64,000 nucleotides of DNA, from positions 930,001 to 994,000 of the forward strand of contig NW_027362960.1 in the NCBI RefSeq assembly GCF_046119375.1. Reading direction: 5' to 3'. The position numbers and the translations under genes are program-made. The notes below the pieces were generated by a model, which was given only the letters and a program-made list of their open reading frames with translations, was not told the DNA's origin and made no database searches. The DNA comes from Phyllobates terribilis (taxonomy: Eukaryota). Numbering within the stretch: the first letter of the stretch is position 1; the number at the start of each line of letters is the position of its first letter. Of the stretch, positions 2,247 to 56,726 are shown piece after piece.

Positions 2247-3454
2247 TTAATCCCTTTTTATTTTGTGTAACTGTATATGCTGTATTAAACATGAACCCTG
2301 GGTGAAACATTTCCCACATTCTGGACATGAATATGACTTTTCTCCAGTGTTAATTCTTTGATGTTTTTGAAGATCTGGTTTCCGGATAAAACATTTCCCA
2401 CATTCTGAACATGAATATGGCTTCTCTCCTGTATGACTTCTGTAATGTTTATGAAGATCTGGTTTCTGGGTAAAACATTTCCCACATTCTGGACATAAAT
2501 ATGGCTTTTCTCCAGTGTGAATTCTTTGATGTTTTTGAAGATCTGGTTTCTGGATAAAACATTTACCACATTCTGGACATAAATATGGCTTTTCTCCAGT
2601 GTGAATTCTTTGATGTCTTTGAAGATCTGGTTTCCGGATAAAACATTTCCCACATTCTGAACATGAATATGGCTTCTCTCCTGTGTGAATTCTTTGATGT
2701 TTATGAAGATCTGATTTCTGGAGAAAACATTTCCCACATTCTGAACATGAATATGGCTTCTCTCCTGTATGACTTCTGTAATGTTTAAGCAAATCTGACT
2801 TATTGCTGAAACATTTCGCACATTCTGAACATGAAAATGGCTTTTCTCCTGTGTGACTTCTTTGATGCATAAGCAATTTAGATTTATGTTCAAAACATTC
2901 CCCACATTCTTGACATAAATATGGCTTTTCTCCAGTGTGAATTCTTTGATGTTTATGAAGATCTGGTTTCTGGATAAAACATTTCCCACATTCTGAACAT
3001 GAATATGGCTTCTCTCCTGTGTGAAATGTTTGATGTTTATGAAGATCTCGTTTCTGGATAAAACATTTCCCACATTCTGAACATGAATATGGCTTCTCTC
3101 CTGTATGACTTCTGTAATGTTTAAGCAAATATGACTTATCGCTGAAACATTTCCCACATTCTGAACATGAAAACGGCTTTTCTCCTGTGTGACTTCTCTG
3201 ATGTGAAAGCAATTTATATTTAGTTTTAAAACATTTCCCACATTCTGAACAGGAAAATGGTTTCTTCCCTGTGGGAATTATTTGATGTTCGACATCCCTT
3301 CTCTGGCTTTCATTTTGCTTAACAGTCTGTGATGAATCCAAGTAGATGACGGATTGAAAAGGCTCAGATGATTGATTTCTGCTCTGAAGGGCTGGAGGTA
3401 TAGCTGGAATAATGGCACGCTTTTCATAGGTATCTGGTTTGACACCACAGTCAT
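2247..3454 (-). CDS. ZNF-A terminal exon, 12 C2H2 fingers (finger 11 lacks its second His)
   Basis: Acceptor ttcttggcag|ATGAC; CxxC-x12-HxxxH repeats every 28 aa; stop TAA at 2249-2247. Confidence 0.95.
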
Positions 3455-6400
3455 CTGCCAAGAATAAATCTGATTTTATTATTTTTTAATATCAATGCCT
3501 TATATTTTATAACATTTCTCTATACATAATTCTATACAAATCAAAGTATAATGAAACTATGACCTAAGACAGTGGTGAGCCACCTGTGCACAAATCCCAT
3601 GGTACTGAACCCCTAACGTACCATCGACGAACATAATACATATACGCAGAAACTTTTGAGGCAATAAAGGGAGGATTAAAAATAAGCTTTATTACATTAC
3701 AATCTAAAGCAACAGAGAAAAATACACGCCATAAAAACAATGAAGATGGGGTATTCCCATCTCTGAGAAACTATACCAATATGTAGTAGGTATAATAAAA
3801 ATAAGATTAGCAAATATCTCCAATTAGAAATGTAGTATAGTTCTTTTGATTCGCTATGTCGCTTACCCCATGTTCAGGGCATTGCAAGTTAGTTGCTAGT
3901 GGTCATAACTATGGATACCTAAGCTACTGCAATGCTCTGCACATGGGATAAGTGACAAAGAATCAGGAGAACTATACCACATTTCTAATTGGAGTCTGAA
4001 TAAACCTCGACCTCACACATCGACAGGTACTCCGAGTGTCATGGGATCACCACGCTGACGTAGCGACCCTCCATCCCCTTACAGCAGAAGGACATGGTGG
4101 CAGAGACCACATTTGTGACTGTGCCGCACACTGGAATGTTATTGTCAGGGGAGTTCCCAATTCGGACCTCGGCCCCCATCAGTCGCTCCAGACCACAGTC
4201 CATCCTGTTAGTTATGGCGATGCTGGATATCTTGTAGCTCTGGCCCAGGTCCAGCTTCCACCAGGGATCCTTCTCCAGGTTGGTGTGGGTGCAGAAGCCA
4301 CTACTGAAGTCGGTGTCTTTGTTCCCATCGATGGCGTTCTTAGCCAATATGCTCCTGGTGGCATACGGATAGTCCGACACCTGGGAGGCCACTCTGGTCC
4401 TTGCTATGTTTGTGGCTACAGGTGCCGGAGCGCATCCCAGAGCCAGAACCACAGATCCCAGTAGAATCAGAGAAGATGGGGGTCGGTACGTCAGCGTGGT
4501 GATCCCAGGACACTCGGAGTACATTTCTAATTGGAGGCATTTTCTATTATTATTATCCAACCTACTATATTTTGGGATAGGATTTTGGAGGTGAGAATAC
4601 CCCTTCAAGGCTGTATGCTTAGGACTTATCCAGGACTCATCCAGATGCCTCATTCCATTGTTTTTTGTGATTACGTTTATCCCTCTTAAATGGCTTTTTG
4701 TATTTTTATGTGTTTTCAACTGCGATCTAATAAATTGTATTTTTAATCTCTATATTGTCTCACATTTCTCTATACACAGTCATGGTTGAAATAGTTGACG
4801 CCCTTAAAATTGTTCCAGAAAATGAAGTATTTCTCCTAGAACATTATTGCAATTACACCTGTTTTGTTATAGACACGTTTATTTCCTTTGTGTGTATTGT
4901 CACTGATCTTTTCTACAGAAATGTTCAATGGAGAATCAAAACTGGACCTTGACCAGATTATTACCTGACCCTACTTCTAAACCCTTTTCTGATCTGCCTA
5001 CATACTTCTTGTTGACCGCAGAATGGTTTGGCTTCTCACTTGACTGTCCTTCCGGGACGTGTACTGCTGCTAGATATTGACCTTGGCTTCTCCAGCTTAG
5101 ATGTTCACCTGCCTGACTTCTGTGTGTGGCCCGGCTCTCTTCTTGACATTCAGCTGTAATCTGGCAACTCACAACTACATTACAATTGGAGACATGGCGC
5201 CTTTCTGCAGCAAATAAAATTCCATTTAACCAATGAAACTTTGCTGCCAAAATGCGTTAATCAAAAAAGGTGCAAAAAAAAGCTTTTTTTGTTATGCATC
5301 AAATCTATCTGCAAGTAAAATGCACGTCAATTACTTGTGTGATCAAACTCATAATATAATGACCACAGGATCTGTGACGTCTCTGTATCTAGTGGTCACT
5401 ACTCACCTGGGTGGTCATATGTAGGAATCTCCTCTTTACACCGCTCATCACCCCTCACATATGTCTCTGTAGTATTAATATGGGTCAGATCTTCACCCTG
5501 AAACAAATATTGTAAAAGTCACAGACAGATGGAGAAGTCCCATCTATGATCAGCTCTAATCCTGCCATCTCCACCGTTCTCATTACACAAGTATAAAACA
5601 TATAATACTGGTGGATAAAACAAGACTGAGCACAAGACCTTCACAGCCATCTACACATCATAGGGGAGATCTCATGACACCTTCTCTCCATCTACCTGAT
5701 GATCCTGAGGAACATTGGGGTCTTCTTGTTTACAGTCCTGTGGAAGAAGAGGACGGGGACATCTCTCTGGTGTTGTCCTCTTACTGGATAGATCTGGAGG
5801 AAACACATACAGGGACTGAATTCATTCTTTACTAGTGTTGAGCCACCCCCGTAGTGTTCGGGTTCGGTTCGGTTCGTCGAACACCGGGATGTTCGAGGAA
5901 CTGTTCGTCGAACTGTTCGTCGAACACCTTAGAACACCGTCGAACACCGTTAAAACCAATGGCAGGCAAACAAAAACACATAGAAACACATAGAAAACAC
6001 CTGCAAAGGTGTCCAAAAGCTGACAAACTGCTCAGAAGACACTCTCTTTAAAAAAGCCGGCCGGCAAATTCAGCAGCGGCATACACCGGTACCCGACAAT
6101 TTAGACAAGAAGGAATAGAGCATCACACATAGATTAGATAGATAGAAACATGTCAGTCACACATATAAGAAGCACGGTGACAGTGTTGGTTACTTCACTT
6201 GTCATTTAGTGTAAAGGATTTATTAAAAAAAATATTAGTGTTTTCATGCACCGTCTCTTTAAAAAAGCCGGCCGGCAATTCAGCATCTGTACCCGACAAT
6301 TTAGAACAGAAAGAATAGAGCTTCACACATAGATTAGATAGATAGAAACATGTCAGTCACATATATAATAAGTACAGTGATAGTGTTGCTTACTGTACTT

Positions 6401-9400
6401 GTCATTTAGTGTAAAGGATTTATTTAAAAAAATAATAGTGTTTTCATGCACTGTCTCTTTAAAAAAGCCGGCCGGCAATTCAGCAGCGGTACCCGACAAT
6501 TTAGAACAGAAAGATAGAGCATCACACATAGATTAGATAGATAGAAACATGTCAGTCACATATATATGAAGTACAGTGATAGTGTTGGTTACTGTACTTG
6601 TCATTTAGTATTAAAATAAAGGATTTATTATTAAAAAAATTGGCGTGGGGTTCCCCTTAATTTTAGGCTCTAGCGGAGGTTAAGCAGACGGCTGGGGCAG
6701 ATGTTTGAAGCCTGGGAAGGGGGTAATACCCACGGAGCTTCCCAGGCTACTAATATCAGCCCCCAGCTGAATACATAGCCTTTACTAGCTATTAAAATGG
6801 GGGACCCCCCAAAAAAAATGACGTGGGGTCCCCCCTAATTTAATAGCTAGCAAAGGCTAGGCAGACAGCTGGGGGCTGATATTAATAGCCCAGGAAGGGA
6901 GCCATGAATATTGGCCCCCTCCCAGGCTAGAAACACCAGCCGTCAGCCGCCCCAGAAATGGCGCATTCATAGGATGCGCCAATTCTGGCACTTAGCCTCG
7001 CTCTTCCACGCTGCCCTGGTGCGGTGGCAGGGGGTAATAGGGTTGGGGTTGATGTCAGCTTATAATGCCAGCTGACATCAAGCCCAGGTTAGTAATGGAG
7101 AGGCGTCTATAAGACACCCCCATTACTAACCCCATAGTCAAAGTTAAAAAAAACACAAACACCCAGAATAAAGTCCTTTAATTGAAATAAAGACACAATC
7201 CTTTATTGTTCTAAATTAAACCATACTTACCATCACGCCCATTCCAGCTGAAGCCAACGATCTCCTGCAATAAAAGAAAAATAATAAAGCAACCTCATCC
7301 TTACCTTTCCATGGTTCCCACGACAGCTTCAGCTCTGCTACATCGAGATGACAGGCTGGACCGCAGCAGAACGCTGCCATCCAGCCTGTCATCCCGCAGA
7401 CACTGAGAAGCGCAGGCTTGCTTGCGCTGCTCAGCGTCTCTCTGTGACGACATCCAGAGGAGCCGAGTTCATGTCCAATGAACTCGGCTCACCTCATGCA
7501 CGTCACTGACAGCGTGGGAAAATTCTCACGCTGAAGCGCTGATTGCAGGAGAATTTTCCCACGCTGTCAGTGACGTGCAGGAGGTGAGCTGAGTTCATTG
7601 GACATGAGCTCACCTCATGCACATCACTGACAGCGTGGGAGAATTCTCCTGCACTCAGCACTTCAGCGTGAGAATTTTCCCACGCTGTCAGTGACGTGCA
7701 TGAGGTGAGCCGAGTTCATTGGACATGACCTCGGCTCATCTGGATGCCGTCACAGCGAGACAGTGAGGAGCGCAAGCATGCCTGCGCTTCTCAGTGTCTG
7801 CGGGATGACAGACTGGATGGCAGCGTTCTGCTGCGGTCCAGCCAGTCATCTCGATGTAGCAGAGCTGAAGCTGTCGTGGGAACCATGGAAAGGTAAGGAT
7901 GAGGTTGGTTTATTATTTTTCTTTTATTGCAGGAGATCGTTGGCTTCAGCTGGAATGGGTGTGATGGTAAGTATGGTTTAATTTAGAACAATAAAGAATT
8001 GTGTCTTTATTTCAATTAAGGGACTTTATTCTGGGTGTTGTGTTTTTTTTAAATACTTTACTAGAAATTCATGGCGGTCATGTCTAATACTGGCGTGACC
8101 CCATGAATTTTGGGCTTGGGGCCAGCTGATAATACCAAGCTGGCCCTAACCCCTTTATTACCCAGTGAGCCACCGCACCAGGGCCCTGGATGAGTTGGGT
8201 ACAGCGCCAGAAGATGGCGCTTCTATGAACGCGCCATTTTCCGGGGTGGCTGCGGACTGCAATTTGCAGCGGGGGTGGCCCAGAAAGCTTGGGCCTCCCT
8301 GCGCTGCAGATTCCAGCCCCCAGCTGCCTAGTTGTACCTGGCTGGACACAAAAATAGGGCGAAGCCCCACGTACTTTTTTTTTAATTATTTCATGAAATT
8401 CATGAAATAATTAAGAAAAAAAGGCCTTCCCTATATTGTTGTGTCCGGCCAGGTACAAATAGGCAGCTGGTGGATGGGGGCAGCCCGTTCCTGCCTGCTG
8501 TACCTGGCTGGACACAAATATAGTGCGAAGCCCCACTTCAATTTTTTTAAATTATTTCAGGAAATTCATGAAATAATTTAAAAAAAATTGACGTGGGGCT
8601 TCGCACTATATTTGTGTCCAGCCAGGTACAGCATGCAGGAACGGGCTGCCCCCAACCACCAGCTGCCTATTTGTACCTGGCCGGACACAACAATATAGGG
8701 AAGCCCTTTTTTTCTTAATTATTTCATGAAATAATTTAAAGAAAATTGACGTGGGGCTTCGCCCTGTTTTTGTGTCCAGCCAGGTACAACTAGGCAGCTG
8801 GGGGCTGGAATCCGCAGTGCAGGGAGGCCCAAGCTTTCTGGGCCACCCCCGCTGCAAATTGCAGTCCGCAGCCACCCCGGAAAATGGCGCGTTCATAGAA
8901 GCGCCATCTTCTGGCGCTGTACCCAACTCATCCAGGGCCCTGATGCGGTGGCTCACTGGGTAATAAAGGGGTTAGGGCCAGCTTGGCATTATCAGCTGGC
9001 CCTAAGCCCGAAATTCATGGGGTCACGCCAATATTAGACATGACCACCATGAATTTCTAGTAAAGTATTTAAAAAAAACACAACACCCAGAAAAAAGTCC
9101 TTTAATTGAAATAAACACACAATTCTTTATTGTTCTAAATTAAACCATACTTACCATCACGCCCATTCCAGCTGAAGCCAACGATCTCCTGAAATAAAAG
9201 AAAAATAATAAAGCAACATCATCCTTACCTTTCCATGGTTCCCATGACAGCTTCAGCTCTGCTACATCGAGATGACAGGCTGGACCGCAGCAGAACGCTG
9301 CCATCCAGTCTGTCATCCCGCAGACACTGAGAAGCGCAGGCTTGCTTGCGCTCCACAGTGTCTCTCTGTGAGGGCATCCAGATGAGCCGAGTTAATGTCC

Positions 9401-12400
9401 AATGAACTCGGCTCACCTCATGCACGTCACTGACAGCGTGGGAAAATTCTCCTGCACTCAGCGCTTCAGCGTGGGAGAATTCTTACACTGAAGCGCTGAG
9501 TGCAGGAGAATTCTTCCACGCTGTCAGTGACGTGCAGGAGGTGAGCTGAGTTCATTGGACATGAGCTCACCTTATGCACGTCACTGACAGCGTGGGAAAA
9601 TTCTCCTGCACTCAGCGCTTCAGCGTGGGAGAATTCTCACGCTGAAGCGCTGAGTGCAGGAGAATTCTCCCACGCTGTCAGTGACGTGCAGGAGGTGAGC
9701 TGAGTTCATTGGACATGAGCTCACCTTATGCACGTCACTGACAGCGTGGGAGAATTCTCCTGCACTCACCGCTTCAGCGTGAGAATTTTCCCACGCTGTC
9801 AGTGACGTGCATGAGGTGAGCCGAGTTCATTGGACATGAACTCGGCTCATCTGGATGTCGTCACAGAGAGACGCTGAGCAGCGCAAGCAAGCCTGCGCTT
9901 CTCAGTGTCTGCGGGATGAGAGGCTGGATGGCAGCGTTCTGCTGCGGTCCAGCCTGTCATCTCGATGTAGCAGAGCTGAAGTTGTCGTGGGAACCATGGA
10001 AAGGTAAGGATGAGGTTGCTTTTTTTTTCTTTTATTGCAGGAGATCGTTGGCTTCAGCTGGAATGGGCGTGACGGTAAGTATGGTTTAATTTAGAACAAT
10101 AAAGGATTGTGTCTTTATTTCAATTAAAGGACTTTATTCTGGGTGTTTGTGTTTTTTTTTACTTTGACTATGGGGTTAGTAATGGGGGTGTCTTATAGAC
10201 GCCTCTCCATTACTAACCTGGGCTTGATGTCAGCTGGCATTATAAGCTGACATCAACCCCAACCCTATTACCCCCTGCCACCGCACCAGGGCAGCGTGGA
10301 AGAGCGAGGCTAAGTGCCAGAATTGGCGCATCCTATGAATGCGCCATTTCTGGGGCGGCTGACGGCTGGTGTTTCTAGCCTGGGAGGGGGCCAATATTCA
10401 TGGCTCCCTTCCTGGGCTATTAATATCAGCCCCCAGCTGTCTGCCTAGCCTTTGCTAGCTATTAAATTAGGTGGGACCCCACGTCATTTTTTTTGGGGGG
10501 TCCCCCATTTTAATAGCTAGTAAAGGCTATGTATTCAGCTGGGGGCTGATATTAGTAGCCTGGGAAGCTCCGTGGGTATTAGGCTGAGTTCACACGATGC
10601 GTATTTCATGCGTTTCCGCGGCGTTTTTGCAGTTGCGTAAACGCCGCGGAAACGCATGAAAAACGCATGGTAGAAGGGAAGCAATGTTCCCCAATGGAAA
10701 TCCGCATGTGCTGTGCCCATGATGCGGATTTTTCCGCAGCGTTAACGCTGCGGTCAAAAATCCGCAGCATGTCAATTAATTTTGCGGAAACGCGGCGATT
10801 TCGCCGCCATTGACTTGCATTAGAACGCGCCAATTCCGCAAGACAGCATTTGTACTTGCGTTATTGGCGCGTTCTAATATGCGGATGGTACCCGGGTGTG
10901 GAGGAGAGGAGAGTCTCATCCACACCCAGGTACCATTAAAAAAGCTGTAAAACAAGAATAAAATAAAAAATAAATGTATTCTTACCATCTGTCGGCCCGC
11001 GCAGCGCTCCCGCTTGGTTCCCGGCACTTGCAGTGAGTTGTAGGACCTGCGGTGACGTCAGAGTCATGTGATGGGTCACGTGACGCTGACGTCGGCAGGT
11101 CTTTCAATTCAAAGTTGCCGGCAGCCGGGAACTTTGTAAAGCAGGACAGCGCGGGCCATCAGAGGTAAGTATATACACTCTCTCGGGTCACACTATATAA
11201 ATCCATGCTGTTTGCATGGATTTATATAGTGTGACCTAGTTGTCAAGCACTTTCCAGGTGATGCTAAAATCGCCTGGAAAGCGCTTGTCAATCTGCATGC
11301 GGAAACGCATGTCAATCTGCATGTGGATCCGCATGTATTCTGCAGGAAAAACGCATGCACAATCTGCATGCGTTTTTTCTGCCAGGGAGATGCAGAAATG
11401 ATGCAGAAATTTTCTGCTTCATTTCTGCATCGTGTGCACATACCCTTACCCCCTTCCCAGGCTTCAAACATCTGCCCCAGCCGTCTGCTTAACCTCCGCT
11501 AGAGCCTAAAATTAAGGGGAACCCCACGCCAATTTTTTTAATAATAAATCCTTTATTTTAATACTAAATGACAAGTACAGTAACCAACACTATCACTGTA
11601 CTTCATATATATGTGACTGACATGTTTCTATCTATCTAATCTATGTGTGATTCTCTATTCTTTCTATTCTAAATTGTCGGGTACCGCTGCTGAATTGCCG
11701 GCCGGCTTTTTTAAAGAGACGGTGCATGAAAACACTATTATTTTTTTTGATAAATCCTTTACGCTAAATGACAAGTACAGTAAGCAGCACTTTCACTGTA
11801 CTTCGTATATATGTGGCTGACATGTTTATATCTATCTAATCTATGTGTGAAGCTCTATTCTTTCGGTTCTAAATTGCCGGGTACAGGTGTATGCCGCTGC
11901 TGAATTGCCGGCTTTTCATGTTTCACTGTTGGCACTGTTCCCATCGATTTGGGCAATCACTGTAATGCCACAACCACCATGGCTGTGGCATTACAGTGAG
12001 TGGCAGACAATCCCTGCATGATTGGTGCTCTAAATAGCGCCAGACATGCAGGACGCGCTTTTGGTGCACGAACAGTTATCGAACATAACCTCGAACAGCC
12101 GAATTTTTTGCAAATCGTTCGGGTTCGTCGAACAACTGGAACACCGCCCAAAACAGCTCGAATTTGAGATTGGCGAACAGTTCTAGTCGAACACCGCTCA
12201 TCTCTATTCTTTACATACAGATAATTATAGGCCGTGTGTAATTAGTCCTATTACCTGGTGATGTGAGGGACTGGGGAACCTCCATCATGAAGTCCTTGTA
12301 CAGATCTTTGTGTTCTTCTAAATATTCCCACTCCTCCATGGAGAAATAGACAGCGACATCCTGACATCTTATAGGAACCTGACACATACAATGATACCGT

Positions 12401-12833
12401 CATCCCCCAGATCCCTTCATAGCATTACTGTATAATGTCCCAGCAGTGTCACCTCTCCAGTCAGCAGCTCAATCATCTTGTAGGTGAGTTCTAGGATCTT
12501 CTGGTCTTTGATGTCCTCATGTATCAGGGGGTGAGGTGGAGGCCCCGTGATTGGGCTCAGGGGTCTTCCCCATCCCTCAGACACAGGGTTCTGACACCGC
12601 TCACTAGAGGTCTTCTTCACTACTATGTAATCCTGGTTATGGAGAGACACATTAATAAATCTCCCTCCAGACATTTCCAGAGTCCTCACCTCTCCAGTTC
12701 TGTCCATCTGTTATTCCCATAGATAAGAATGATGTAATGTGACGTCATCAGAATCTCTCACCTCTCCAGTAAGCCGGAAGAGGATCTCTAGGGTGAGGTG
12801 GAATATCCTCTCCGCCATCTTGTCTCTGTCCAT
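2247..12833 (-). CDS. ZNF-A: KRAB-like C2H2 zinc-finger protein (XlCOF/XlCGF-like), 6 coding exons, 590 aa, 12 fingers
   Basis: Minus-strand exons 12833-12762, 12632-12453, 12378-12255, 5793-5696, 5497-5407, 3454-2247. All introns are GT-AG with matching phases; the total is 1773 nt with no internal stop. Contains a KRAB-A-like box [14 protein letters not shown] and TGEKPY linkers. Confidence 0.9.
3747..4605. mobile_element. Palindromic MITE (T2/Kolobok-like ends), host of the fucolectin insert
   Basis: Ends ggggtattcc ... gaatacccct; 3750-3835 is the reverse complement of 4521-4605. Confidence 0.5.
3995..4520 (-). pseudogene. F-type lectin (fucolectin) pseudogene insert, collapsed form
   Basis: Signal peptide joined to an F-type lectin domain with the H-x26-R-x-D-x4-R motif. 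The start codon is deleted and a TGA follows VIP. Flanked by ACATTTCTAATTGGAG at 3979-3994 and 4521-4536. Confidence 0.88.
4777..4901 (+). mobile_element. Tc1 terminal-repeat remnant
   Basis: cagtcatgg...aaattgttccagaaaatgaagtatttctc resembles amphibian Tc1 TIRs as I recall them; no partner end was found. Confidence 0.5.
5407..5793 (-). CDS. ZNF-A exons 4 (5793-5696) and 5 (5497-5407)
   Basis: [33 protein letters not shown] and [30 protein letters not shown], with canonical splice sites. Confidence 0.88.
6044..6640. repeat. About 200-211-bp tandem repeat x3 (two inverted copies at 11540-11914)
   Basis: ctctttaaaaaagccggccggc starts at 6044, 6255 and 6455. Confidence 0.85.
6052..11914. repeat. 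Giant nested inverted repeat, axis about 8564
   Basis: The left arm is the reverse complement of the right arm. Mirror ORF pairs 8165-8410/8606-8956 and 8158-8370/8751-8963 have outer coordinates summing to 17121. Confidence 0.92.
10582..11445. mobile_element. PIF/Harbinger-type MITE nested in the right palindrome arm
   Basis: TTA TSD (10579-10581, 11446-11448); imperfect TIR GGCTGAGTTCACACGATGC / GCATCGTGTGCACATACCC; absent at the mirror position (about 6725) in the left arm. Confidence 0.88.
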
Positions 12834-12902
12834 ATCAACCTTTGACAGGAAACTTCTCTTATATAGAAGATCTTCACTGAGAGGATCCGATATTGTAGAG
12901 AC
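12255..12902 (-). CDS. ZNF-A exons 1-3 (N-terminal region and KRAB-A-like exon)
   Basis: [24 protein letters not shown] / [13 protein letters not shown]...ELLTGE / [41 protein letters not shown]. Confidence 0.88.
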
Positions 12903-13984
12903 CTGAATGAGAAGAAGATGAGAAGATGTAACGTCATCAATAATTCTATGTAATAATACAATCACTGATTCCGGTATAAAGCAGTAATCTGTGGATCTGA
13001 TCCTGGATGATGCCGGAAGAAGAAGTGGATTTTTATGGCGGCCGTTAATGAGCTTCGCTTTGAGGACTGGAGGAGGTTTGGCCTGAACGCTGCACTCGTG
13101 GTGTGAACACGGACATAGTAGATTATTTAGGGATATTTTCTTGTCCTGCCCTAAACTTGCTTATTCAAATGAATAGGTCCACGAAAAAGAACAGCCTGTC
13201 CACGGATGATAGCTGTGTGTTAAAGAGTTTATCCAGGACTATATTATTTTTATAACTATGGGCAGAAGAAGTAAAAGGCAGATAGTTCCTAACTGCCTGC
13301 CTGCCCTGCCTCAATGTCTGCGGGAACAGAGCGGTCACGGACTGCTCCTGCCAGTGACTCTGCGGTTTCTAATGAGTCACGTAGACGGAGCAGCGGCTTC
13401 TCTTTGGCTCTGCTTTCTTGATGGGACGTGACTGACGACATCACACTGATTGTCAGCTGCCTCCCTGCTGCCTCCCTGCGAGCAGCCAGCGGTCAATCAG
13501 AGGGATGATTTATTTCACCATGCAAAAAAAACAGACACAAAATAGACGCATAGTGTGAATAACGGCAAATTCTGAGAGACAATAATGGGGAATCTCCACA
13601 TACCTCCACCTGCAGACAGGGCCGCCATCAGGGCATCACTGCCCTTACTGCTGTTTGGGGCCCCGTGAGCAGCAGTACAGAGAGGGGCCGGGTCTAGTCA
13701 GGGCCCCCCTCTTGTGCGTCTGCTCACGGCGCTCCATGCACGGCACTCCATGCTGCAATAAAGTGCCGAGCACTGGGGCGCACACCGCCTTAGATGGCGC
13801 ACATATTGGCACCGAGTTCCTTACTGAAGCTGCGCCGCTGCAGCAGCTCCTTCATACTTCAGGAGTCAGGAGCACCCGGTGGCGGCGTGCACCTCCTCAT
13901 CGCAACAGGAGCGCCAGGATGCTGCAGGGATCGTATGTGGGGTAAGTATGACAATTTAATTTTTTTTAAAAAAATTAAATGGAG

Positions 13985-15220
13985 TGGGGGGAGGATGAGC
14001 TGCACATGATGGGGAATTGGGAGTGGAGGGAGGATGAGCTGCACATGGTGGGGAATTTGGAGTGGGAGGAGGATGAGCTGCACATGGGGAATTGACAGTG
14101 GGGGAGGATGAGCTGCACATGGGAATTAGCAGTTGGGGGAGGATGAGCTGCACATCATGGGGAATTTGGAGTGGGAGGAGGATGAACTGCACATGGGGAA
14201 TTGGCAGTGGGGAAGGATGAGCTGCACATGGGGAATTAGCAGTGGGGGAGGATGAGCTGCACGTGATGGGAAATTGGGAGGGGGGAGAGGATGAGCTGCA
14301 CATGATGTGGAATTTGGAGTGGGAGGAGGATGAGCTGCACATGGGGAATTGGCAGTGGGGGAGGATGAGCTGCACATCGGGAATTATCAGTGGGGGATGA
14401 TGAGCTGCACGTGATGGGGAATTGGGAGTGGGGAGAGGATGAGCTGCACATGATGTGGAATTTGGAGTGGGAGGAGGATGAGCTGCACATGGGGAATTGG
14501 CAGTGGGGGAGGATGAGCTGCACATGGGGAATTATCAGTGGGGAGAGGATGAGCTGCACGTGATGGGGAATTGGGAGTGGGGAGAGGATGAGCTGCACAT
14601 GATGGGGAATTTGGAGTGGGAGGAGGATGAGCTGCATATGGGGAATTGGCAGTGGGGGAGGATGAGCTGCACATGGGGAATTAGCTGCACATGGGGAATT
14701 GGCAGTGGGGGAGGATGAGCTGCACATGGGGAATTATCAGTGGGGGAGGATGAGCTGCACATGGGGAGTTGGCAGTGGGGGAGGATTAGCTGCACATGGG
14801 GAATTAGCAGTGGGGGGAGGATGAGCTGCACGTGATGGGGAATTGGCAGTGGGGGAGGATGAGCTGCACGTGATGGGGAATTGCCAGTGGGGGGTGGATG
14901 AGCTGCACATAATGATGAGTTGGGAGTGGGGGGAATGTTGGGTGTGGTGAGGAGGATGAACTGCACATGGGGAATTGGCAGTGGGGGGAGGATGAGCTGC
15001 ACGTGATGGGGAATTGGCAGTGGGGGAGGATGAGCTGCACGTGATGGGGAATTGCCAGTGGGGGGTGGATGAGCTGCACATAATGATGAGTTGGAAGTGG
15101 GGGGAATGTTGGGAGTGGTGAGGAGAATGAACTGCACATGGGGAATTGGCAGTGGGGGGTGTGAGCTGCACATGGGGAATTGGGAGTGGAGGGGTGAGCT
15201 GCACATGGAGGATTGAGAGT
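13985..15220. repeat. G-rich minisatellite, 35-38-bp units
   Basis: gggggaggatgagctgcacat(gat)ggggaattggcagt repeated; strong G/C strand skew. Confidence 0.92.
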
Positions 15221-15832
15221 GGGGGGAGGATGAGCGCATGGTGGATTGGGAGTGGTGGGTGGGAAGAGCGAACGGTGAATTAGGGGTGGGGAGAGCAAAT
15301 GGTGGATTGAAAAGTGGGAGTGGGGAAAGCACATGATGAATTGGGAGTGGGGTGGGGAAAGCAAATGGTGAATGGGGGATGAGGGAGAGTAAATGATGAA
15401 TAGAGGGTGGGGGTGGGGAGAGCAGGAAATAATGAATTGGGGCAGAGGGTCATGTAAATATAATGAATCGGGGGAGCAGGAGGTACAGAGTGGGGGGCAT
15501 TGCGGATGCAGGAGTGTGACTGGTAATAAATTCTGGGAAAGAGTACAGGCTCTAATTAATTTACATATTTATTAGGTGGGGAAAGTGGCTATTTACAGTT
15601 ATTTGGGGCGCAGGGATGGATTACAATTATATTTGGAATGGTGGGTTGCATAATGACTAATTATATATTAATGGTGGGTGCACATCTGTATTCAGCTGTG
15701 TAATGTAGAAGTTGGGGAATATGCTCTACATAACTGTGTTATTTTATTCAAAGACAAGTCCTGGCTGGAAGAAGTGATGGTGGTCTGTGCTGGATGAAGG
15801 AGAAAAGTGAAGATGAAGGACTTCAACTAGAG

Positions 15833-25149: not shown

Positions 25150-28055
25150 GTAGAGGATTTATTAGGGTATTCTGCTACCGGAGATGCACTGCGACTTCTA
25201 TATAATTTTTGTAAATACCCTCAGAGCCATAGATAGGCCAAAGGGTAGCGCTCTGTACTAGAAGTGCCCGACTTGTTCGTTTATATACAAGGCCACCCTC
25301 AAGAATTTCTGTTCTTCCATATAGATTGGGATGTGTTCATAGGCATCCTTCACATCTAGCAATCTCATATAAAACACTCTGGAAATAGCATTTTATGGTC
25401 TCCATTTTGAAGGGCCAGTAGACTAGAAATTTGTTCACCCCTTTCTTTCAAGTTCACTATGGTCCTGAAGGTGCCATCTGTTTTTTTTTTATTAGGAATA
25501 GGGGGAATAGAATCCCTTCCCCTGCTCCTGCACTGGCACCTCTGGGAAATTCTCTTATCTCCTGCCTAGTCCAGTATATCATCTAGTACCCGTCCAAAGA
25601 GAAATTCTCCTTCGCATGGAATTGGGCATAGCTTGACCTTGGACTGAACATCTCCCGGCCAGCTCTTGAGCCATAGTGCTCTAAGTGCAGCTTTTTATAG
25701 GTTTGCCGATCTGTTTGCAAACATCACTGAGTCTGTCGAGGCGTTTGCGAGGAAAGTAGCTGCTCCTTGAATTATATCCTTAGGGACGTTGTTCTTAATC
25801 TTATCCTCTAACTGCTGTAACCAAATCATCATGGATCTGGCCATGCAGGTTGCCCAAACTGCTGGTTTTATTGCCCCTTCTGAAGACTTCCATATCTGCT
25901 TCAGATACACATCCACTTTTTTATCAAGAGGATCTTCAAAGGGCAGGGTAGATCTTTTGGTTGACTTGGCCACCGCCATATCTATTTTAGGGGTTTTGTC
26001 CCACATGGCTGCTTCTTCCTCATCAAACAGACACCTCCTTTTGGATGACGACGGCAGTGGATCCTTTTTCTCAGGCTTCCTTCATTCCCTATTAATGAGC
26101 ATTTAAATTCTTTCACTAACCGGAAATATGCAATTTTTCTTTTATACCAAACCCCCGAAACATAATGTCCTGGACTGTTCTTGGGGTTTTAGTATCTGAC
26201 ATGCCCATAGTAGTTCTTTACCAACTTATCTGTGTCTTCTGTAGGAAAACACGGCCTCCCCCCTGTATCACTATCAGAGGATGAGGAAGAAGAGGAGTCC
26301 GATTCGTCTCTATCCTCAGATATTACAGACTCTTCTGAATCAGCGGCCTGCTGTTTGGGTCTTTTCTCCCTTTTACCACTTTCCTGCTGAATCAGTGAAT
26401 TAATGGAGTCTGTAACTTCTATCCTAATTATGGATTTTAAATCCATGGCAAAGTTGGGGGTTTCTTCAGAGGTGGTCTTCAGAATACAAGAATCTCTTCA
26501 TATATGTGCTGGGTAAGTTATCGCCGCACATTCTTTATCTTTTAGCTTGGCGCTACACCTCTTAGGCCCCTCCTAGCAAAGAACACAGAGAGAAAAGGAC
26601 CTATTCAACATGATGAACATATACGAAGATCACTCACCACTCTGCCGTTCAGTCTAGGGTACCGGAGATGGAGGCTGGATCAGTTCACATGACCGTTCTC
26701 CCCTGGACGTGGTCGACTCACAAACTGCCTTGTTCTTCTGGTTAATCTGTCACTTGTACAGCTGTCACTGCTGCGTCTCTGACGATAACGCAGCTGCCGT
26801 GGTGGCTGTGGCTGCTGCTACGCCTCCAGCATATCCATGGCATCAAGAGGAAATCTAGCGTAGTATAGTTACCCATCATATGAAGGTGACCTTGTCGCGG
26901 TTGATGGGCACACATAAATTGGCCAAATTATGCGCAAAGAACCTTCATTTTTCAAAGTGACATTAGTCTAGATACTATATTTCCTATATATTCATGTATC
27001 GAGTGCCGAAGTTTTCTGCTATTTAGATTATGTTTTTCTTCAGAGCACCCGAATAGACCAGTGAGCGACCCCTTTCTTTTCTATTAATCAATTTTGGGAT
27101 CCCGCTCCTGGAGCATTGCAGCAGGTACGTGTTCACACTATTAGAAGTTTGATAGCCTTTTTTCTGACCATGTGTCCCTCCCATTCAGTCACAGGTGGTT
27201 TTAACTAGCTCTACCAGCCCATACATTGTAGGTTAAAAGCCCAGCAGAGACATATTGTCCATGCAGGCTTGCAGCCCAAGTGTGGCATATCCAGTGGTAG
27301 CGTAGTATAGTTACCCATCATACGAAGGTGACCTTGTCACGGTTGATGGGCACACATAAATTGGCCAAATTATGCGCAAAGAACCTTCATTTTTCAAAGT
27401 GACATTAGTCTAGATACTGTATTTCTTATATATTCATGTATGGAGTGCCGAAGTTTTCTGCTATCAAGAGGAAAGCTGCCGGCCTCCACCATCTGGTGGT
27501 CAACCGTCCACTATATACCGGAGGGACGCCACAGCTCCAGCGTCTGCTGCCGACCTCCCCCCAGAAATCTCGCATTATTTCCGGGTCAGACTTTTCCTTC
27601 CAGCGAGCGGTGTGAAGGGAGCATACCGGCGAGCCCTGTTCATAAACAGCCCCTGCATTTTACTGCCGCATTGCTTTCTGGCACACTTCCTCAGCAGGGC
27701 GCGCTAGATATCCCACTAGTGCGCCTCGCGCTTGCGCAGATCTTGGTTGCCATAACTCCAGCGCACTCAACACGGGGTACGCCAACCACGTTCAACAAAG
27801 TGGTCATGCAACTGCACACCCCAACGTCCTGGCCAGCGGTAGTGTCTCCAGATCTGTCAGCATCCCAGATGCTTGCAGACACCAACCAGACTTGGGTAAG
27901 TTCAATTGTACCGTTACTTTACTCTCTAGGTTCCTTCAAGGACCGGAAACCATATTGATGAAAAGGAGAGGTACCACCCTTTTGTTCAGTAGGTTTCCTG
28001 TCCTTGATTAGTGGATACCCTCTCTCTCAGGTGGTGCTGTCATGGGAGAAGGGGA
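25150..28055 (-). mobile_element. Decayed DIRS-like retrotransposon (gag and RT fragments)
   Basis: WDKTPKIDMAVAKSTKRSTLPFEDPLDKKVD (LAP2alpha-like gag of vertebrate DIRS); RT motifs FKMETIK and DVKDAYEHIPI at 25320-25470; homology to the ZNF intron stops at about 28055. Confidence 0.72.
26854..27463. mobile_element. Unclassified 610-bp insertion with 166-bp terminal direct repeats
   Basis: Repeats at 26856-27021 and 27298-27463; flanking duplication (A)TCAAGAGGAAA at 26842-26853 and 27463-27474. Confidence 0.75.
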
Positions 28056-28134
28056 AAAACAAGACTGACCACAAGACCATCACAGCCGTCTACACATCAT
28101 AGGGGAGATCTCATGACACCTTCTCTCCATCTAC

Positions 28135-28909
28135 CTGATGATCCTGAGGAACATTGGGGTCTTCTTGTTTACGGTCCTGTGGAAGAAGAGGACGGGGACA
28201 TCTCTCTGGTGTTGTCCTCTTACTGGATAGATCTGGAGGAAACACATACAGGGACTGAATTCATTCTTTACATACAGATAATTATAGGCCGTGTGGTTTT
28301 AGCCCTGTCTATTACCTGGTGATGTGAGGGGCTGGGGAACCTCCATCATGATGTCCTTGTACAGATCTTTGTGTCCTTCTAAATACTCCCACTCCTCCAT
28401 GGAGAAATAGACAGCGACATCCTGACATCTTATAGGAACCTGACACATACAATGATACCGTCATCCCCCCGATCCCTCCATAGCGTTACTGTATAATGTC
28501 CCAGCATTCCCAGCAGTGTCACCTCTCCAGTCAGCAGCTCAATCATCTTGTAGGTGAGTTCTAGGATCTTCTGGTCATTGATGTCCTCATGTATCAGGGG
28601 GTGAGGTGGAGGCCCCGTGATTGGGCTCAGGGGTCTTTCCCATCCCTCAGACACAGGGTCCTCACAGCGCTCTCTAGAGGTCTTCTTCACTACTGTGTAA
28701 TCCTGGTTATGGAGAGACACATTAATAAATCTCACTACAGACATTTCCAGAGTCCTCACCTCTCCAGTTCTATCCATCTGTTATTCCCATAGATAAGAAT
28801 GATGTAATGTGACGCCATCAGAATCTCTCACCTCTCCAGTAAGCTGGAAGAGGATCTCTAGGGTGAGGTGGAATATCCTCTCCGCCATCTTCTTCTTCTC
28901 CTTCTCCAT
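28135..28909 (-). pseudogene. ZNF-C: 5' half of a ZNF paralog (exons 1-4, 160 open codons), no finger exon of its own
   Basis: Exons 28909-28832, 28702-28523, 28439-28316, 28232-28135, all open with intact splice sites; truncated by the DIRS element in intron 4. Confidence 0.82.
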
Positions 28910-39292: not shown

Positions 39293-42200
39293 TTAATCCC
39301 TTTTTATTTTGTGTAACTGTATATGCTGTATTAAACATGAACCCTGGGTGAAACATTTCCTACATTCTGAACATGAATATGGCTTCTCTCCTGTATGACT
39401 TCTGTAATGTTTAAGCAAATCTGACTTATTGCTGAAACATTTCACACATTCTGAACATGAAAATGGCTTTTCTCCTGTCTGACTTTTTTGATGCATAAGC
39501 AATTTAGATTTATGTTCAAAACATTTCCCACATTCTTGACATGAATATGGCTTTTCTCCAGTGTGAATTCTTTGATGTTTATGAAGATCTGGTTTCTGGA
39601 TAAAACATTTCCCACATTCTGAACATGAATATGGCTTCTCTCCTATGTGAAATTGTTGATGTTTATGAAGATCTCGTTTCTGGATAAAACATTTCCCACA
39701 TTCTGAACATGAATATGGCTTCTCTCCTGTATGACTTCTGTAATGTTTAAGCAAATATGACTTATCGCTGAAACATTTCCCACATTCTGAACATGAAAAC
39801 GGCTTTTCTCCTGTGTGACTTCTCTGATGTGTAAGCAATTTATATTTAGTTTTAAAACATTTCTCACATTCTGAACAGGAAAATGGTTTCTTTTCTGTGG
39901 GAATTATTTGATGTTCGACATCCCTTCTCTGGCTTTCATTTTGCTTAACAGTCTGTGATGAATCCAAGTAGATGACGGATTGAAAAGGCTCAGATGATTG
40001 ATTTCTGCTCTGAAGGGCTGGAGGTATAGCTGGAATAATGGCACGCTTTTCATAGGTATCTGGTTTGACACCACAGTCATCTGCCAAGAATAAATCTGAT
40101 TTTATTATTTTTTAATATCAATGCCTTATATTTTATAACATTTCTCTATACATAATTCTTTACAAATCAAAGTATAATGAAACTATGACCTATGACAGTG
40201 GTGAGCCACCTGTTCACAAATCCCATGGTACTCAACCCCTAATATACAATCGACAAACATAATACATACAGGCAGAAACGTTTGAGACAATAAAGGGAGG
40301 ATTAAAAATAAGGTTTATTACATTACAATCTACAGATAAAAATACACGCCAAAACATGTAAGATGGGGTATTCCCATCTCCGAGAAACTATCCCAATATG
40401 TAGTAGGTGTAATAAAAATAAGATTAGCAAATATCTCCAATTAGAAATGTATAGTTCTTCTGATTCGCTATGTTGCTTACCCCATGTTCAGGGCATTGCA
40501 AGTTAGTTGCTAGTGGTCATAACTATGGATACCTAAGCTACTGCAATGCTCTGCACATGGGGTAAGTGACAAAGAATCAGGAGAACTATACCACATTTCT
40601 AATTGGAGTCTGAATAAACGTCGACCTCATACATCGACAGGTACTCCGAGTGTCATGGGATCACCACGCTGACGTCCTTCTGCTGTAAGGGGATGGAGGG
40701 TCGCTACAAGGTGGCAGAGACCACATTCGTGACTGTGCCGCACACTGGAATGTTATTGTCGGGGGAGTTCCCGATTCGGACCTCGGCCCCCATCAGTCGC
40801 TCCAGACCACAGTCAATCCTGTTGGTTATGGCGACGCTGGATATCTTGTAGCTCTGGCCCAGGTCCAGCTTCCACCAGGGATCCTTCTCCAGGTTGGTGT
40901 GGGTGCAGAAGTCACTATTGAAGTCGGTGTCTTTGTTCCCATCGATGGCATTCTTAGCCAATATCCTCCTGGTGGCATACGGATAGTCCGACACCTGGGA
41001 GGCCACTCTGGTCCTTGCTATATTTGTGGCTCCAGGTGCAGGAGCACATCCCAGAGCCAGAACCACAGATCCCAGTAGAATCAGAGAAGATACAAGATTC
41101 ATCCTGCAGGAGATGTAAGTGAAGGTCCTGTGTAATCTCCACATCTGATAAATGCTGGTTCCCTGGTAACCAGTGACTATTCCCTGCAGTCTGTACTCAC
41201 AGGAGCTGCTCCTGCACAATCTGGATGAATCTTGTATCTTCTCTGATTCTACTGGGATCTGTGGTTCTGGCTCTGGGATTTGCTCCTGCACCTGCAGCCA
41301 CAAACATAGCAAGGACCAGAGTGGCCTCCCAGGTGTCGGACTATCCGTATGCCACCAGGAGCATATTGGCTAAGAATGCCATCGATGAGAACAAAGACAC
41401 CGACTTCAATAGTGACTTGTGCACCCACACCAACCTGGAGACTGATGGGGGCCGAGGTCCGAATTCGGAACTTCCCCGACAATAACAATCCGGTGTGCGG
41501 AACAGTCACGAATGTTATCTCTGCCACCTTGTGCTTCTGCTGTAAGGGGATGGGGGTCGGTACGTCAGCGTGGTGATCCCAGGACACTCGGAGTACATTT
41601 CTAATTGGAGGTATTTTCTATTATTATTATCACACCTACTATATTTTGGGATAGGATTTTGGAGATGGGAATACCCCTTCAAGGCTGTATGCTTAGGACT
41701 TATCCAGGACTCATTCAGATGCCTCATTCCATTGTTTTTTGTGATTACATTTATCCCTCTTAAATGGCTTTTTGTATTTTTATGTGTTTTCAACTCCGAT
41801 CTAATAAATTGTATTTTTAATCTCTATATTGTCTCACATTTCTCTATACACAGTCATGGTTGAAATAGTTGACGCCCTTAAAATTGTTCCAGAAAATGAA
41901 GTATTTCTCCTAGAACATTATTGCAATTACACCTGTTTTGTTATAGACACGTTTATTTCCTTTGTGTGTATTGTCACTGATCTTTTCTAGTGAAATGTTC
42001 AATGGAGAATCAAAACTGGACCTTGACCAGATTATTACCTGACCCTACTTCTAAACCCTTTTCTGATCTGCCTACATACTTCTTGGTGACCGCAGAATGG
42101 TTTGGCTTCTCACTTGACTGCCCTTCCGGGACGTGTACTGCTGCTAGATATTGACCTTGGCTTCTCCAGCTTAGAGTCCACCTGCCTGACTTCTGTGTGT

Positions 42201-43513
42201 GGCCCGGCTCTCTTCTTGACATTCAGCTGTAATCTGGCAACTCACAACTACATTACAATTGGAGACATGGCGCCTTTCTGCAGCAAATAAAATCCCATTT
42301 AACCAATGCAACTTTGCTACCAAAACGCGTTAATCAAAAAAGGTGTAAAAAAGAAAAGCTTTTTTTGTTATGCATCAAATCTATCTGCAAGTAAAATGCA
42401 CGTCAATTACTTGTGTGATCAAACTCATAATATAATGACCACAGGATCTGTGACTTCTCTGCATTTAGTGGTCATTACTCACCTGGGTGGTCATATGTAG
42501 GAGTCTCCTCTTTACACCGCTCATCACCCCTTCCCATATGTCTCTGTAGTATTAATATGGGTCAGATCTTCACCCTGAAACAAATATTGTAAAAGTCACA
42601 GACAGATGGAGAAGTCCCATCTATGATCAGCTCTAATCCTGCCATCTCCACCATTCTACACAAGTAGAAAACATATAATACTGGTGGATAAAACAAGACT
42701 GAACACAAGACTTTCACAGCCGTCTACACATCATAGGGGAGATCTCATGACACCTTCTCTCCATCTACCTGATGATCCTGAGGAACATTGGGATCTTCTT
42801 GTTTACAGTCCTGTGGAAGAAGAGGACGGGGACATCTCTCTGGTGTTGTCCTCTTACTGGATAGATCTGGAGGAAACACATACAGGGACTGAATTCATTC
42901 TTTACATACAGATAATTATAGGCCGTGTGAATTCAGTCCTGTCTATTACCTGGTGATGTGAGGGGCTGGGGAACCTCCATCATGATGTCCTTGTACAGAT
43001 CTTTGTGTCCTTCTAAATACTCCCACTCCTCCATGGAGAAATAGACAGCGACATCCTGACACCTTAGAGGAACCTGACACATACAATGATACCGTCATCC
43101 CCCAGATCCCTTCATAGCGTTACTGTATAATGTCCCAGCAGTGTCACCTCTCCAGTCAGCAGCTCAATCATCTTGTAGGCGAGTTCTAGGATCTTTTGGT
43201 CATTGATGTCCTCATGTATTAGGGGGTGAGACGGAGGCCTTGTGATTGGGCTCAGGGGTGTCACCCATCCCTCAGACACAGGGTTCTGACAGCGCTCACT
43301 AGAGGTCTTCTTCACTACTATGTAATCCTGGTTATGGAGAGACACATTAATAAATCTCACTACAGACATTTCCAGAGTCCTCACCTCTCCAGTTCTGTCC
43401 ATCTGTTTTTCCCATAGATAAGAATGATGTAATGTGACGTCATCAGAATCTCTCACCTCTCCAGTAAGCCGGAAGAGGATCTCTAGGGTGAGGTGGAATA
43501 TCCTCTCCGCCAT
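39293..43513 (-). pseudogene. ZNF-B: paralog with 7 fingers and a +1 frameshift in exon 5
   Basis: Exons 43513-43457, 43327-43148, 43073-42950, 42866-42769, 42574-42483 (92 nt vs 91 in ZNF-A) and 40080-39293. The frame reads TAT GGG AAG GGG TGA, predicting a 169-aa finger-less product. Confidence 0.82.
40609..41594. pseudogene. Head-to-head inverted pair of fucolectin pseudogene copies
   Basis: Minus copy ATG at 41102 and plus copy ATG at 41225, with a 122-bp spacer; 16-bp flanking duplication at 40593-40608 and 41595-41610. Confidence 0.9.
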
Positions 43514-44311
43514 CTTGTCTCGCTCCCTATCAACCTTTGACAGGAAACTTCTCTTATATAGAAGATCTTCACTGAGAGGATCCGATATTGTAGAGACCTG
43601 AATGAGAAGAAGATGAGAAGATGTAACGTCACCAATAATTCTATGTAATAATACAATCACTGATTCCGGTATAAAGCAGTAATCTGTGGATCTGATCCTG
43701 GATGATGCCGGAAGAAGAAGTGGATTTTTATGGCGGCCATTAATGAGCTTCGCTTTGAGGACCGGAGGAGGTTTGGCCTGAACGCTGCACTCGTGGTGTG
43801 AACACGGACATAGTAGATTATTTAGGGATATTTTCTTGTCCTGCCCTAAACTTGCTTATTCAAGTGAATAGGTCCACGAAAAAGAACAGCCTGTCCACGG
43901 ATGATATCTGTGTGTTAAAGAGTTTATCCAGGACTATATTATTTTTATAACTATGGGCAGAAGAAGTAAAAGGCAGATAGTTCCTAACTGCCTGCCTGCC
44001 CTGCCTCAATGTCTGCGGGAACAGAGCGGTGACGGACTGCTCCTGCCAGTGACTCTGCGGCTTCTAATGAGTCACGTAGACGGAGCAGCGGCTTCTCTTT
44101 GGCTCTGCTTTCTTGATGGGACGTGACTGACGACATCACACTGATTGTCAGCTGCCTCCCTGCTGCCTTCCTGCCAGCAGCCAGCGGTCAATCAGAGGGA
44201 TGATTTATTTCACCATGCAAAAAAAACAGACACAAAATAGACGCATAGTGTGAATAATGGCAAATTCTGAGAGACAATAATGGGGAATCTCCACATACCT
44301 CCACCTGCAGA

Positions 44312-52649: not shown

Positions 52650-52917
52650 CTCTAATTTGAATGAATACACTTTAAATCCATTTACAAGGATCTATTGGAG
52701 GGCAAGTCTCATGCCAGCAGCCGCGTAATTCCAGCTCCAGTAGCGTCCACTAAAGCTGCTGCAGTTAAAAAGCTTTTATAAGGATCGAGCTCGGCTGTCC
52801 ACCGCAAGGCATCCTACTGCCAGTCCCAGCCCCTATGCCTTGGGGTGCCTCCTGATGCTCTTCACTGAGTATCCCGTGGTCCCAAAGCATTTCCTTTGAA
52901 AAAATTAAGTGTCCAAA
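52650..52917 (+). pseudogene. Degenerate 18S rRNA fragment
   Basis: ttggagggcaagtct..tgccagcagccgcg-taattccagctcca...gctgcagttaaaaagct...tttgaaaaaatta matches the conserved 18S core, with many substitutions and indels. Confidence 0.88.
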
Positions 52918-53029
52918 CTACAGGTGGTGTAGCTTGCTTAACAGCCGGGATAATCCGCTGACTAGCAGACACTGCTACTAGGCACAAAGTATTTCCTGGG
53001 CTAGATGCAGTTAAAAATTTGTAATTAGA

Positions 53030-56410: not shown

Positions 56411-56726
56411 CAAAATTATTTTCCGGGCTAGATGCAGCTAAAAATTATTATTAATTTTAAATCTGGTGAAGCTTTAGTATAGATGGCCTAATAGGATCAG
56501 TGCTACACACTGCTACAAAGCCCAAATTATTTTCCAGTCAAGATACAGATAAACATGATTAGTAATTTTAAATCTGGTGGAGCTTATTATAGATGGCCTA
56601 ATAGAATCAGTGCTGCACACTGCTACAAAGCCCAAATTATTTTCCAGCCAAGATACAGATAAACATGATTAGTAATTTGAAAGCTTAAAACGGTTGGTAG
56701 GGTGATTTTAACCAATCATCAAGCTT

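Follow-up and report, generated by a model that had tools for sequence, protein, structure and literature searches.

What is an almost spacer-free 5-kb palindrome doing inside a mobile element, and how was it built? Long palindromes of this kind are normally unstable, and mobile elements that form hairpins are normally short. The case described here lies in a 64,000-nt stretch of the Phyllobates terribilis genome (NCBI RefSeq assembly GCF_046119375.1, contig NW_027362960.1, positions 930,001 to 994,000 of the forward strand), hereafter the window, to whose numbering all coordinates refer. Positions 5833-12206 of the window hold a single insertion of 6,374 bp, set between perfect 8-bp target duplications. 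It is an unusual variant of a known mobile-element type: a passenger of the hAT superfamily with a compound-palindrome interior. In full, we consider it likely that the insertion represents a non-coding, high-copy hAT passenger with unrelated palindromic cargo, built by fold-back and with arms that have been partly homogenised.

Did this structure arrive in one piece? Its boundaries can be read against two unoccupied copies of the same site elsewhere in the window (strands are given in this and the following lists where they apply):

5825-5832: left target-site duplication, ttctttac, read directly; at either empty site, the two flank matches share exactly 8 bp
12207-12214: right target-site duplication, ttctttac, read directly
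42898-42905: first empty paralogous site, a single ttctttac without footprint, from flank matching and sequence
28264-28271: second empty paralogous site, a single ttctttac without footprint, from flank matching and sequence

Both empty sites are identical to the element flanks and run through one copy of ttctttac. They belong to a triplicated zinc-finger gene segment (2833-15000, 28053-28891 and 39459-45596; 94-98% identical), of which only the first copy carries the element. Because both sites are free of footprints, the whole 6,374 bp arrived as one unit after the segmental duplication. This demonstrates the unit mobility that a preliminary description of the locus, made from the sequence alone, had deduced from a perfect target duplication and an empty site. 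Both target duplications also fit nTnnnnAn, the consensus for such sites.

To which superfamily do the ends belong? Besides the termini themselves, a second element in the window provides the answer:

5833-6042, plus strand: left hAT terminus, with the 11-bp terminal inverted repeat at 5833-5843 and CGAACA/TGTTCG subterminal repeats after it; 90.5% identity to 52148-52346; seven hexamers in 210 bp
11936-12206, plus strand: right hAT terminus, six CGAACA copies and the terminal inverted repeat at 12196-12206
52148-60428, minus strand: candidate autonomous partner with the same left terminus; a 1233-aa open reading frame (ORF) at 56727-60428 with zf-BED and hAT dimerisation domains; other end outside the window

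Matching at 9 of 11 bp (5833-5843 against 12196-12206), the terminal inverted repeats are imperfect and would be weak evidence alone; it is the empty sites that fix the boundaries. The hexamer CGAACA/TGTTCG, in contrast to its seven copies in the left 210 bp and six in the right 294 bp, is absent from the 5.9-kb interior. Its clusters, presumably transposase-binding sites, number only three in the 64-kb window, the third lying at 52148. There, 52148-52346 is ~90.5% identical to the left 210 bp of the element, including 28 identical terminal bases, and this is the element's only match elsewhere in the window. Apart from the 11-bp inverted repeat and short motifs, the two end regions have nothing in common, and within the element hAT sequence is limited to these ends of 210 and ~270 bp. 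The minus-strand ORF of the partner matches zf-BED (4e-10) and Dimer_Tnp_hAT (4e-13) in Pfam, and its nearest neighbours in feature space are ZBED/Ac-type chordate proteins. Since an 8-bp duplication, two clean empty sites, subterminal repeats that occur nowhere but at the ends, and a left end held in common with a transposase-bearing hAT all coincide, 5833-12206 is supported as a non-autonomous hAT element that moved as one unit, and its hAT affiliation is established.

Some features of the partner deserve mention in their own right. Its 1233-aa ORF is long for a hAT transposase and has the BED finger at residues 313-359. The 8 bp gttagtag directly precede its start at 52148, and from this element up to position 64000 we found neither a second CGAACA cluster nor a flank match; position 60428 marks just the start of the ORF, and the true far end of the element is either beyond the window or lost. 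A 110-bp tandem array occupies 60545-62149.

What, then, does the passenger carry? Its interior is without coding capacity: the longest ORF has 116 aa, and Pfam returned nothing for the four ORFs of at least 80 aa. The cargo modules have no second copy in the 64-kb window, and the cargo is not similar to the transposase element found there. With 6,374 bp, the element also falls outside the size range (below ~0.8 kb) of a miniature inverted-repeat transposable element (MITE). Instead, 6043-11935 is nearly all symmetric. We mapped the symmetry by inverted-repeat search and BLAST of the region against itself, and the tandem periods by Tandem Repeats Finder, which returned 200, 121 and 154 bp. The resulting layout reads X-A-[B|B']-C|C'-[B|B']-A'-X', with 200-bp tandem units on either side and with X and A limited to 6610-7143 in the left-to-right order. 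From left to right the modules are:

6043-6609, plus strand: ~2.8 tandem units of ~200 bp, outermost left arm; Tandem Repeats Finder period 200, 2.6 copies, 92% matches; direct self-match offsets 211 and 411
6521-7144, plus strand: X and A, the distal near-identical tract of the left arm; mirror at 10161-10581 and 11449-11651; 1 mismatch in 624 aligned bp
7144-8052: P1, a 909-bp palindrome B|B' with axis 7598 and TTAA on both borders; 94.8% self-complementary
7460-7740: left hairpin array of 31-bp hairpins and two 81-bp hairpins, period 121 bp
8053-9068: central palindrome C|C', three ~167-bp hairpin units, global axis 8564; A recurs at 8053-8400 in inverted, decayed form
9069-10159: P2, the second B|B' palindrome, with central hairpins of 114, 114 and 81 bp; ~187 bp longer than P1
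10160-10581, minus strand: A', mirroring A (6724-7143) with 1 mismatch in 420 bp
10582-11445, plus strand: 864-bp PIF/Harbinger-like MITE, right arm only; TTA at 10579-10581 and 11446-11448, imperfect ~19-bp inverted repeats
11446-11935, minus strand: mirror of X (11446-11562), two 200-bp units and an outermost ~30 bp unpartnered here

The preliminary description had proposed four nested levels of symmetry, a recurring axis hairpin and an older, decayed palindrome, and every one of these was recovered; no such levels appeared in shuffled sequence. At the largest scale, the arms around ~8564 pair 6724-7687 with 9621-10581 at 97.4%, and 7670-9451 is self-complementary at 95.1%; further out, 6287-6726 is mirrored by 11446-11886 at 96.6%, with 213 nt 100% complementary to 6514-6726. 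Each arm contains a palindrome of its own, 7144-8052 on the left (axis 7598; 94.8%) and 9071-9451 against 9781-10159 on the right (axis ~9615; 94.8%). Within these lie the hairpins of the third level, two on the left (7498-7578 and 7619-7699) and three on the right (9422-9535, 9576-9689 and 9730-9810). Their 22-nt stem motif has ten matches, which form the five hairpins, where none would be expected by chance. The 31-bp hairpins of the fourth level are perfect at 7460-7490 and 9818-9848 and have one mismatch at 7707-7737 and 9384-9414. The local centre is a 29-bp hairpin (8550-8578, axis 8564), which recurs at 8384-8412 and 8717-8736 to make three copies in all. The decayed symmetry links ~6820-7143 with 8053-8400 at an identity of ~70-75%, with an alignment score of 202 as compared to 16 ± 7 for shuffles. 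This anatomy stands as an observation, whatever its origin.

Does such gross inverted symmetry merely reflect two hAT elements lying head to head, or one within the other (a 'double Ds'), or else a true Foldback element of the Mutator or P superfamily? The ~200-bp subrepeats of the outer arms do resemble those of Foldback, Galileo and Tetris (PMC4079207, PMC3573991). Yet the 5.9-kb interior has no hAT subterminal motifs, the palindrome ends 210 and ~270 bp short of the termini, the ends are not inverted copies of each other, the target duplication is 8 bp long and the matching transposase is of the hAT type. We therefore rejected the head-to-head arrangement for its lack of internal hAT motifs and the Foldback assignment for arms that stop short of the termini, and regard both as very improbable.

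Palindromes are also a known class of assembly artefact, be it from a fold-back chimeric read or from collapsed arms. The element does not look like such a product: its arms differ by 4% centrally, by indels, by unit number and by the 864-bp MITE, which has its own TTA target duplication, and the structure is framed by two unlike hAT ends and a perfect 8-bp duplication, to which the empty sites correspond. The preliminary description had already held the arm-specific insertion and the arm mismatches against an artefact, rightly in our view. Moreover, fractions of 0.88-0.92 of the sampled 31-mers were present in eight sequencing runs of one organism from two independent studies, as opposed to 0.23-0.34 in other organisms. 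On these grounds we rejected an artefact, to which we attach next to no credence.

The same runs inform on the abundance of the family. Contigs (Logan, k=31) were mapped over 5790-11789, a range that leaves the right junction outside, and contigs of this kind cannot span the palindrome. Roughly 120,000 contigs per run fell on the range and every bin was covered, so all modules are high-copy. The loose ends of the contigs speak to the diversity of the copies: after 6042, many proceed with the stretch found beyond 52346 in the transposase element, and many carry, before 6067, the mirror of 11906-11935 (27 of 30 bases), from which it follows that the palindrome extends further left in other copies. 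Single contigs that join near-mirror positions (e.g. 7166>10098 and 8062>9089) hint at members with near-symmetric deletions of the centre, although this evidence is weak because each side of a joint comprises fewer than 30 letters. Contigs of two other organisms match cargo pieces of 140-360 bp with 0-4 differences, and the left end lies at a different insertion site there; these organisms are either very close relatives or share the family across species. Metagenome contigs, scanned for exact occurrences of the hairpin stem and of the left terminus, gave no match.

In what order did the layers arise? When the four B half-arms are brought into the same orientation and aligned, the grouping (B1,B2')(B1',B2) is favoured by all five informative sites and by one indel, and no site supports any other grouping; therefore, B|B' came first and an inverted duplication of the whole unit followed. 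This settles the relative order of the older palindrome and the duplication, and it bears out in part the earlier proposal that the family grows by repeated fold-back: in outline, the evidence supports inverted duplication as the origin of the large levels. The design is less recursive than had been proposed, however, with several levels turning out to be tandem palindromic units (121/154-, 167- and 200-bp). A tandem array of a palindromic unit is automatically a larger, multi-axis palindrome, so that the three axis hairpins, the two-versus-three hairpins and part of the recursion can be attributed to slippage. In the same vein, the 81-bp hairpins on the left may derive from the 114-bp hairpin on the right by complementary deletions of 33 bp, and an 18-bp direct repeat within the hairpin would fit a slippage deletion.

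Alternatively, the nesting might stem from transposition, with hairpin MITEs landing inside one another and the 0.9-kb B|B' jumping to a TTAA in the centre of an older palindrome; the second level could indeed be a palindromic element inserted at TTAA. P1 is bordered by TTAA on both sides, identity falls from 95% in P1 to ~70-75% outside exactly at these borders, every module is high-copy, and one genuine nested insertion, the Harbinger-like MITE, is present. TTAA is itself palindromic, though, and hence expected at mirrored positions anyway, and the older palindrome and P share axis 7598 exactly, a coincidence that an insertion would produce only by chance. Since P occupies mirrored positions in both arms with the site patterns of a whole-unit inverted duplication, transposition would account for the second level at most. 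As an explanation of the nesting we find it unlikely, and prefer inverted duplication.

If the arms descend from one inverted duplication, do they differ evenly? Divergence between the left arm and its mirror is distributed as follows:

6521-7144: 1 mismatch in 624 aligned bp (0.16%)
7145-7459: 6 mismatches in 315 aligned bp
7727-8560: 37 mismatches in 834 aligned bp (4.4%)

The distal tract and the inner arms (1/624 versus 37/834) thus differ strongly (Fisher p=1.4e-8). CpG decay was ruled out as the cause of this mosaic, as non-CpG divergence gives the same contrast. The flanking duplicons offer a local yardstick, with 2.2-2.4% substitutions between the first and third copies. As compared to this, the inner arms (4.4%) are more diverged; therefore, the inner palindrome predates the segmental duplication whereas the insertion is younger, which in turn means that the element transposed as an already imperfect palindrome. 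At 6900 and its mirror 10405, both arms carry a state that is in the minority among family contigs, and inner-region changes at 7763, 8634 and 8818 are restricted to one arm when family contigs are set against the arm alignment. Together, the mosaic divergence and the mirrored minority variant suggest that the distal tract was homogenised by arm-to-arm conversion.

A different reading of the same mosaic would place the unusual process at the other end, with error-prone repair or hypermutation close to the centre of the palindrome. Mismatches accumulate mainly within 0.8 kb of the centre and in the hairpin arrays, and the centre-proximal B copies have eight private changes each as compared to one and four in the distal B copies. 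This would leave the shared minority variant at 6900/10405 without an explanation. In addition, the distal tract is the one that departs from the local clock, because its 0.16% is far below the 2.3% of the duplicons while the 4.4% of the inner arms is only moderately above. Centre hypermutation is possible but, to our mind, somewhat unlikely, and we continue to favour conversion of the distal arms. The proposal that the family keeps its symmetry by arm-to-arm conversion, as put forward in the preliminary description, thereby gains the mosaic and the 6900/10405 variant in its favour; it stops short of proof, with one site and a rival at the centre.

Several points weigh against the reading as a whole. 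The mirrored variant amounts to one site, and the family contigs behind it map to both arms. The mosaic could also come from faster mutation near the centre, and what speaks for conversion is drawn from a single full copy. The terminus held in common with the transposase element concerns the left end only, the right end of the partner being outside the window. Finally, independent sequencing support consists of the k=31 contigs over 5790-11789, which are too short to span the palindrome.

The MITE in the right arm provides a last marker of relative time. Its TTA duplication and imperfect ~19-bp inverted repeats agree with the 3-bp TWA target and terminal repeats of PIF/Harbinger MITEs. At its mirror position the left arm is uninterrupted, with two inverted matches that overlap by 3 bp. 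The MITE lies inside the near-identical tract and has been neither copied to the other arm nor erased, and for this reason it was most likely inserted after homogenisation. According to contig coverage its own family is high-copy, and the present copy differs from the majority of these contigs at at least 14 sites. As a side observation, the ratio of observed to expected CpG is 1.13 in the MITE, 1.06-1.22 in the hAT ends and 0.36-0.75 in the palindromic cargo.

How might all this have come about? Small palindromic units of 26 to 167 bp could have arisen first and been expanded by slippage into short tandem arrays. An older palindrome, A-B|B'-A*, would then have formed, the inner 0.9 kb of which is better preserved than its outer part. 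A single inverted duplication of the whole unit would have created the 5-kb palindrome, of whose distal arms ~0.6-0.9 kb may subsequently have been homogenised from arm to arm. Thereafter, the Harbinger-type MITE would have entered the right arm and unit numbers would have shifted (three versus two tandem units, two versus three hairpins). As for the insertion itself, transposase supplied in trans from elements like that at 52148 would have cut and pasted the 6.4 kb into the zinc-finger intron, after the segmental duplication of the cluster. Here, the position of the MITE completes an order of events, from older palindrome through inverted duplication to MITE insertion, that we consider demonstrated; the molecular mechanism of fold-back and conversion is what we infer.

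Non-autonomous hAT elements, including some in a frog, have been reshaped by gap filling and template switching (PMC8277862), and aberrant transposition of Ac/Ds, likewise hAT elements, yields inverted duplications (bioRxiv 10.1101/2020.01.07.897926). Repair synthesis by snap-back or between the arms, set off at double-strand breaks or excision gaps, would be the likeliest source of both the inverted duplications and the homogenised tract; in it, a broken or excised strand would be templated by its own complementary arm. This would amount to a palindromic version of gap filling and template switching. Taken further, the family may be a self-renewing palindrome generator, in which each break or excision leads to snap-back priming that rewrites the arms in tracts and adds new fold-back layers. 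We regard this extension as speculative and rather unlikely. If true, it would explain how high-copy, multi-kb, near-spacer-free palindromes persist and deepen in a vertebrate genome instead of being deleted. No function for the host is implied.

The element can be placed next to several known systems. Long genomic palindromes include palindromic AT-rich repeats as well as the amplicon palindromes of sex chromosomes, whose arms remain similar through arm-to-arm conversion. Like such long genomic palindromes, the present arms are similar in tracts and have an AT-rich hairpin at the centre; genomic palindromes, in contrast, are single-locus and usually have spacers, whereas the present element belongs to a dispersed mobile family. 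With MITEs it has in common that it is non-coding, high-copy, presumably mobilised in trans and prone to form hairpins, yet MITEs are usually shorter than ~800 bp and comprise one hairpin, while the 6.4-kb element has hairpins at about five scales.

With maize Ds, the hAT-N elements of frogs and 'Pack-TIR' elements (PMC8277862), it shares short imperfect terminal inverted repeats, subterminal motif clusters, an 8-bp duplication and a presumed reliance on transposase in trans, as well as an interior that is unrelated to the autonomous element and was probably gained or remodelled by gap filling and template switching. It differs from these in that its interior is a 5-kb, near-spacer-free compound palindrome, neither a deletion derivative nor a captured gene fragment. 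For a non-autonomous element, it is also very large (6.4 kb) while being high-copy. Foldback (FB), Galileo and Tetris (PMC3573991, PMC4079207) are similarly composed mostly of inverted repeat, non-coding, variable in their arms and marked by evidence of sequence exchange. The ~200-bp subrepeats of the outer arms (~2.8 on the left, two on the right) recall Foldback arms, including the ~220-bp TIR-220 of Tetris (PMC4079207). In those elements, however, which are members of the Mutator or P superfamilies, the long inverted repeats form the very ends; in the present one, they are internal cargo between unlike hAT ends, with further palindromes nested inside the arms. The products of alternative Ac/Ds transposition (bioRxiv 10.1101/2020.01.07.897926) resemble the present element as hAT-dependent inverted duplications with the potential to form double-stranded RNA. 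Those products are locus-bound composites of transposon and flanking DNA, unlike the compact unit described here, which has intact ends and would continue to transpose. In the full-text paper literature, we found no description of nested-palindrome hAT elements in amphibians.

Dispersed high-copy palindromes of 5 kb would offer natural replicates for the study of centre deletion, arm-to-arm transfer and the tolerance of cruciform-prone DNA in a vertebrate. The particular value of the present copy lies in its being datable against a segmental duplication with two empty sites, in the sharp age mosaic of its arms and in a MITE that marks the order of events.

What of the gene that received the insertion? 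On the minus strand, an exon ends near 12255 and an open exon starts near 5793, both upstream of a C2H2 finger exon at 2247-3461. The element would hence lie in a ~79-nt intron of a putative C2H2 zinc-finger gene, enlarging it roughly 80-fold to ~6.46 kb, with the insertion point probably ~32-39 nt upstream of the putative 3′ splice site. Splice sites and exons were placed from sequence only, and the exons were taken singly rather than as one joined gene model. Enlargement of an intron this close to its acceptor raises the question of how that copy of the zinc-finger gene is spliced.

An intronic location also invites the hypothesis that the element acts as a hairpin-RNA locus, transcription of which would give rise to double-stranded RNA and to small RNAs, by which the family or other targets would be silenced. 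A fold of the complete element as single-stranded DNA has an energy of -3369 kcal/mol and pairs 90% of the bases, for the most part across the global axis; P1 on its own reaches -547 kcal/mol as compared to -122 ± 5.6 for shuffles. The host gene is of a transcribed type, and in maize, inverted hAT duplications trigger silencing by small interfering RNAs (bioRxiv 10.1101/2020.01.07.897926). Conversely, Rfam yielded for the element only sub-threshold matches to unrelated microRNA-precursor models, none at gathering score, and we rejected an RNA gene since these are generic hairpin look-alikes. Nor could the transposase gene be the target, because the cargo does not resemble the transposase element at 52148. 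A hairpin-RNA locus thus appears quite improbable, and the element is better viewed as a passenger.

Two further features of the surrounding locus are worth recording. A G-skewed minisatellite is present in both duplicons (13980-15300 and 44670-45650), with a GC skew of 0.45-0.6 and self-match offsets ~37 bp apart. Within the zinc-finger locus, an ORF at 4039-4719 (minus strand) encodes an F5/8 type C (fucolectin-like) galactose-binding domain, of which the third duplicon carries inverted partial copies at 41236-41441 and 41435-41596.

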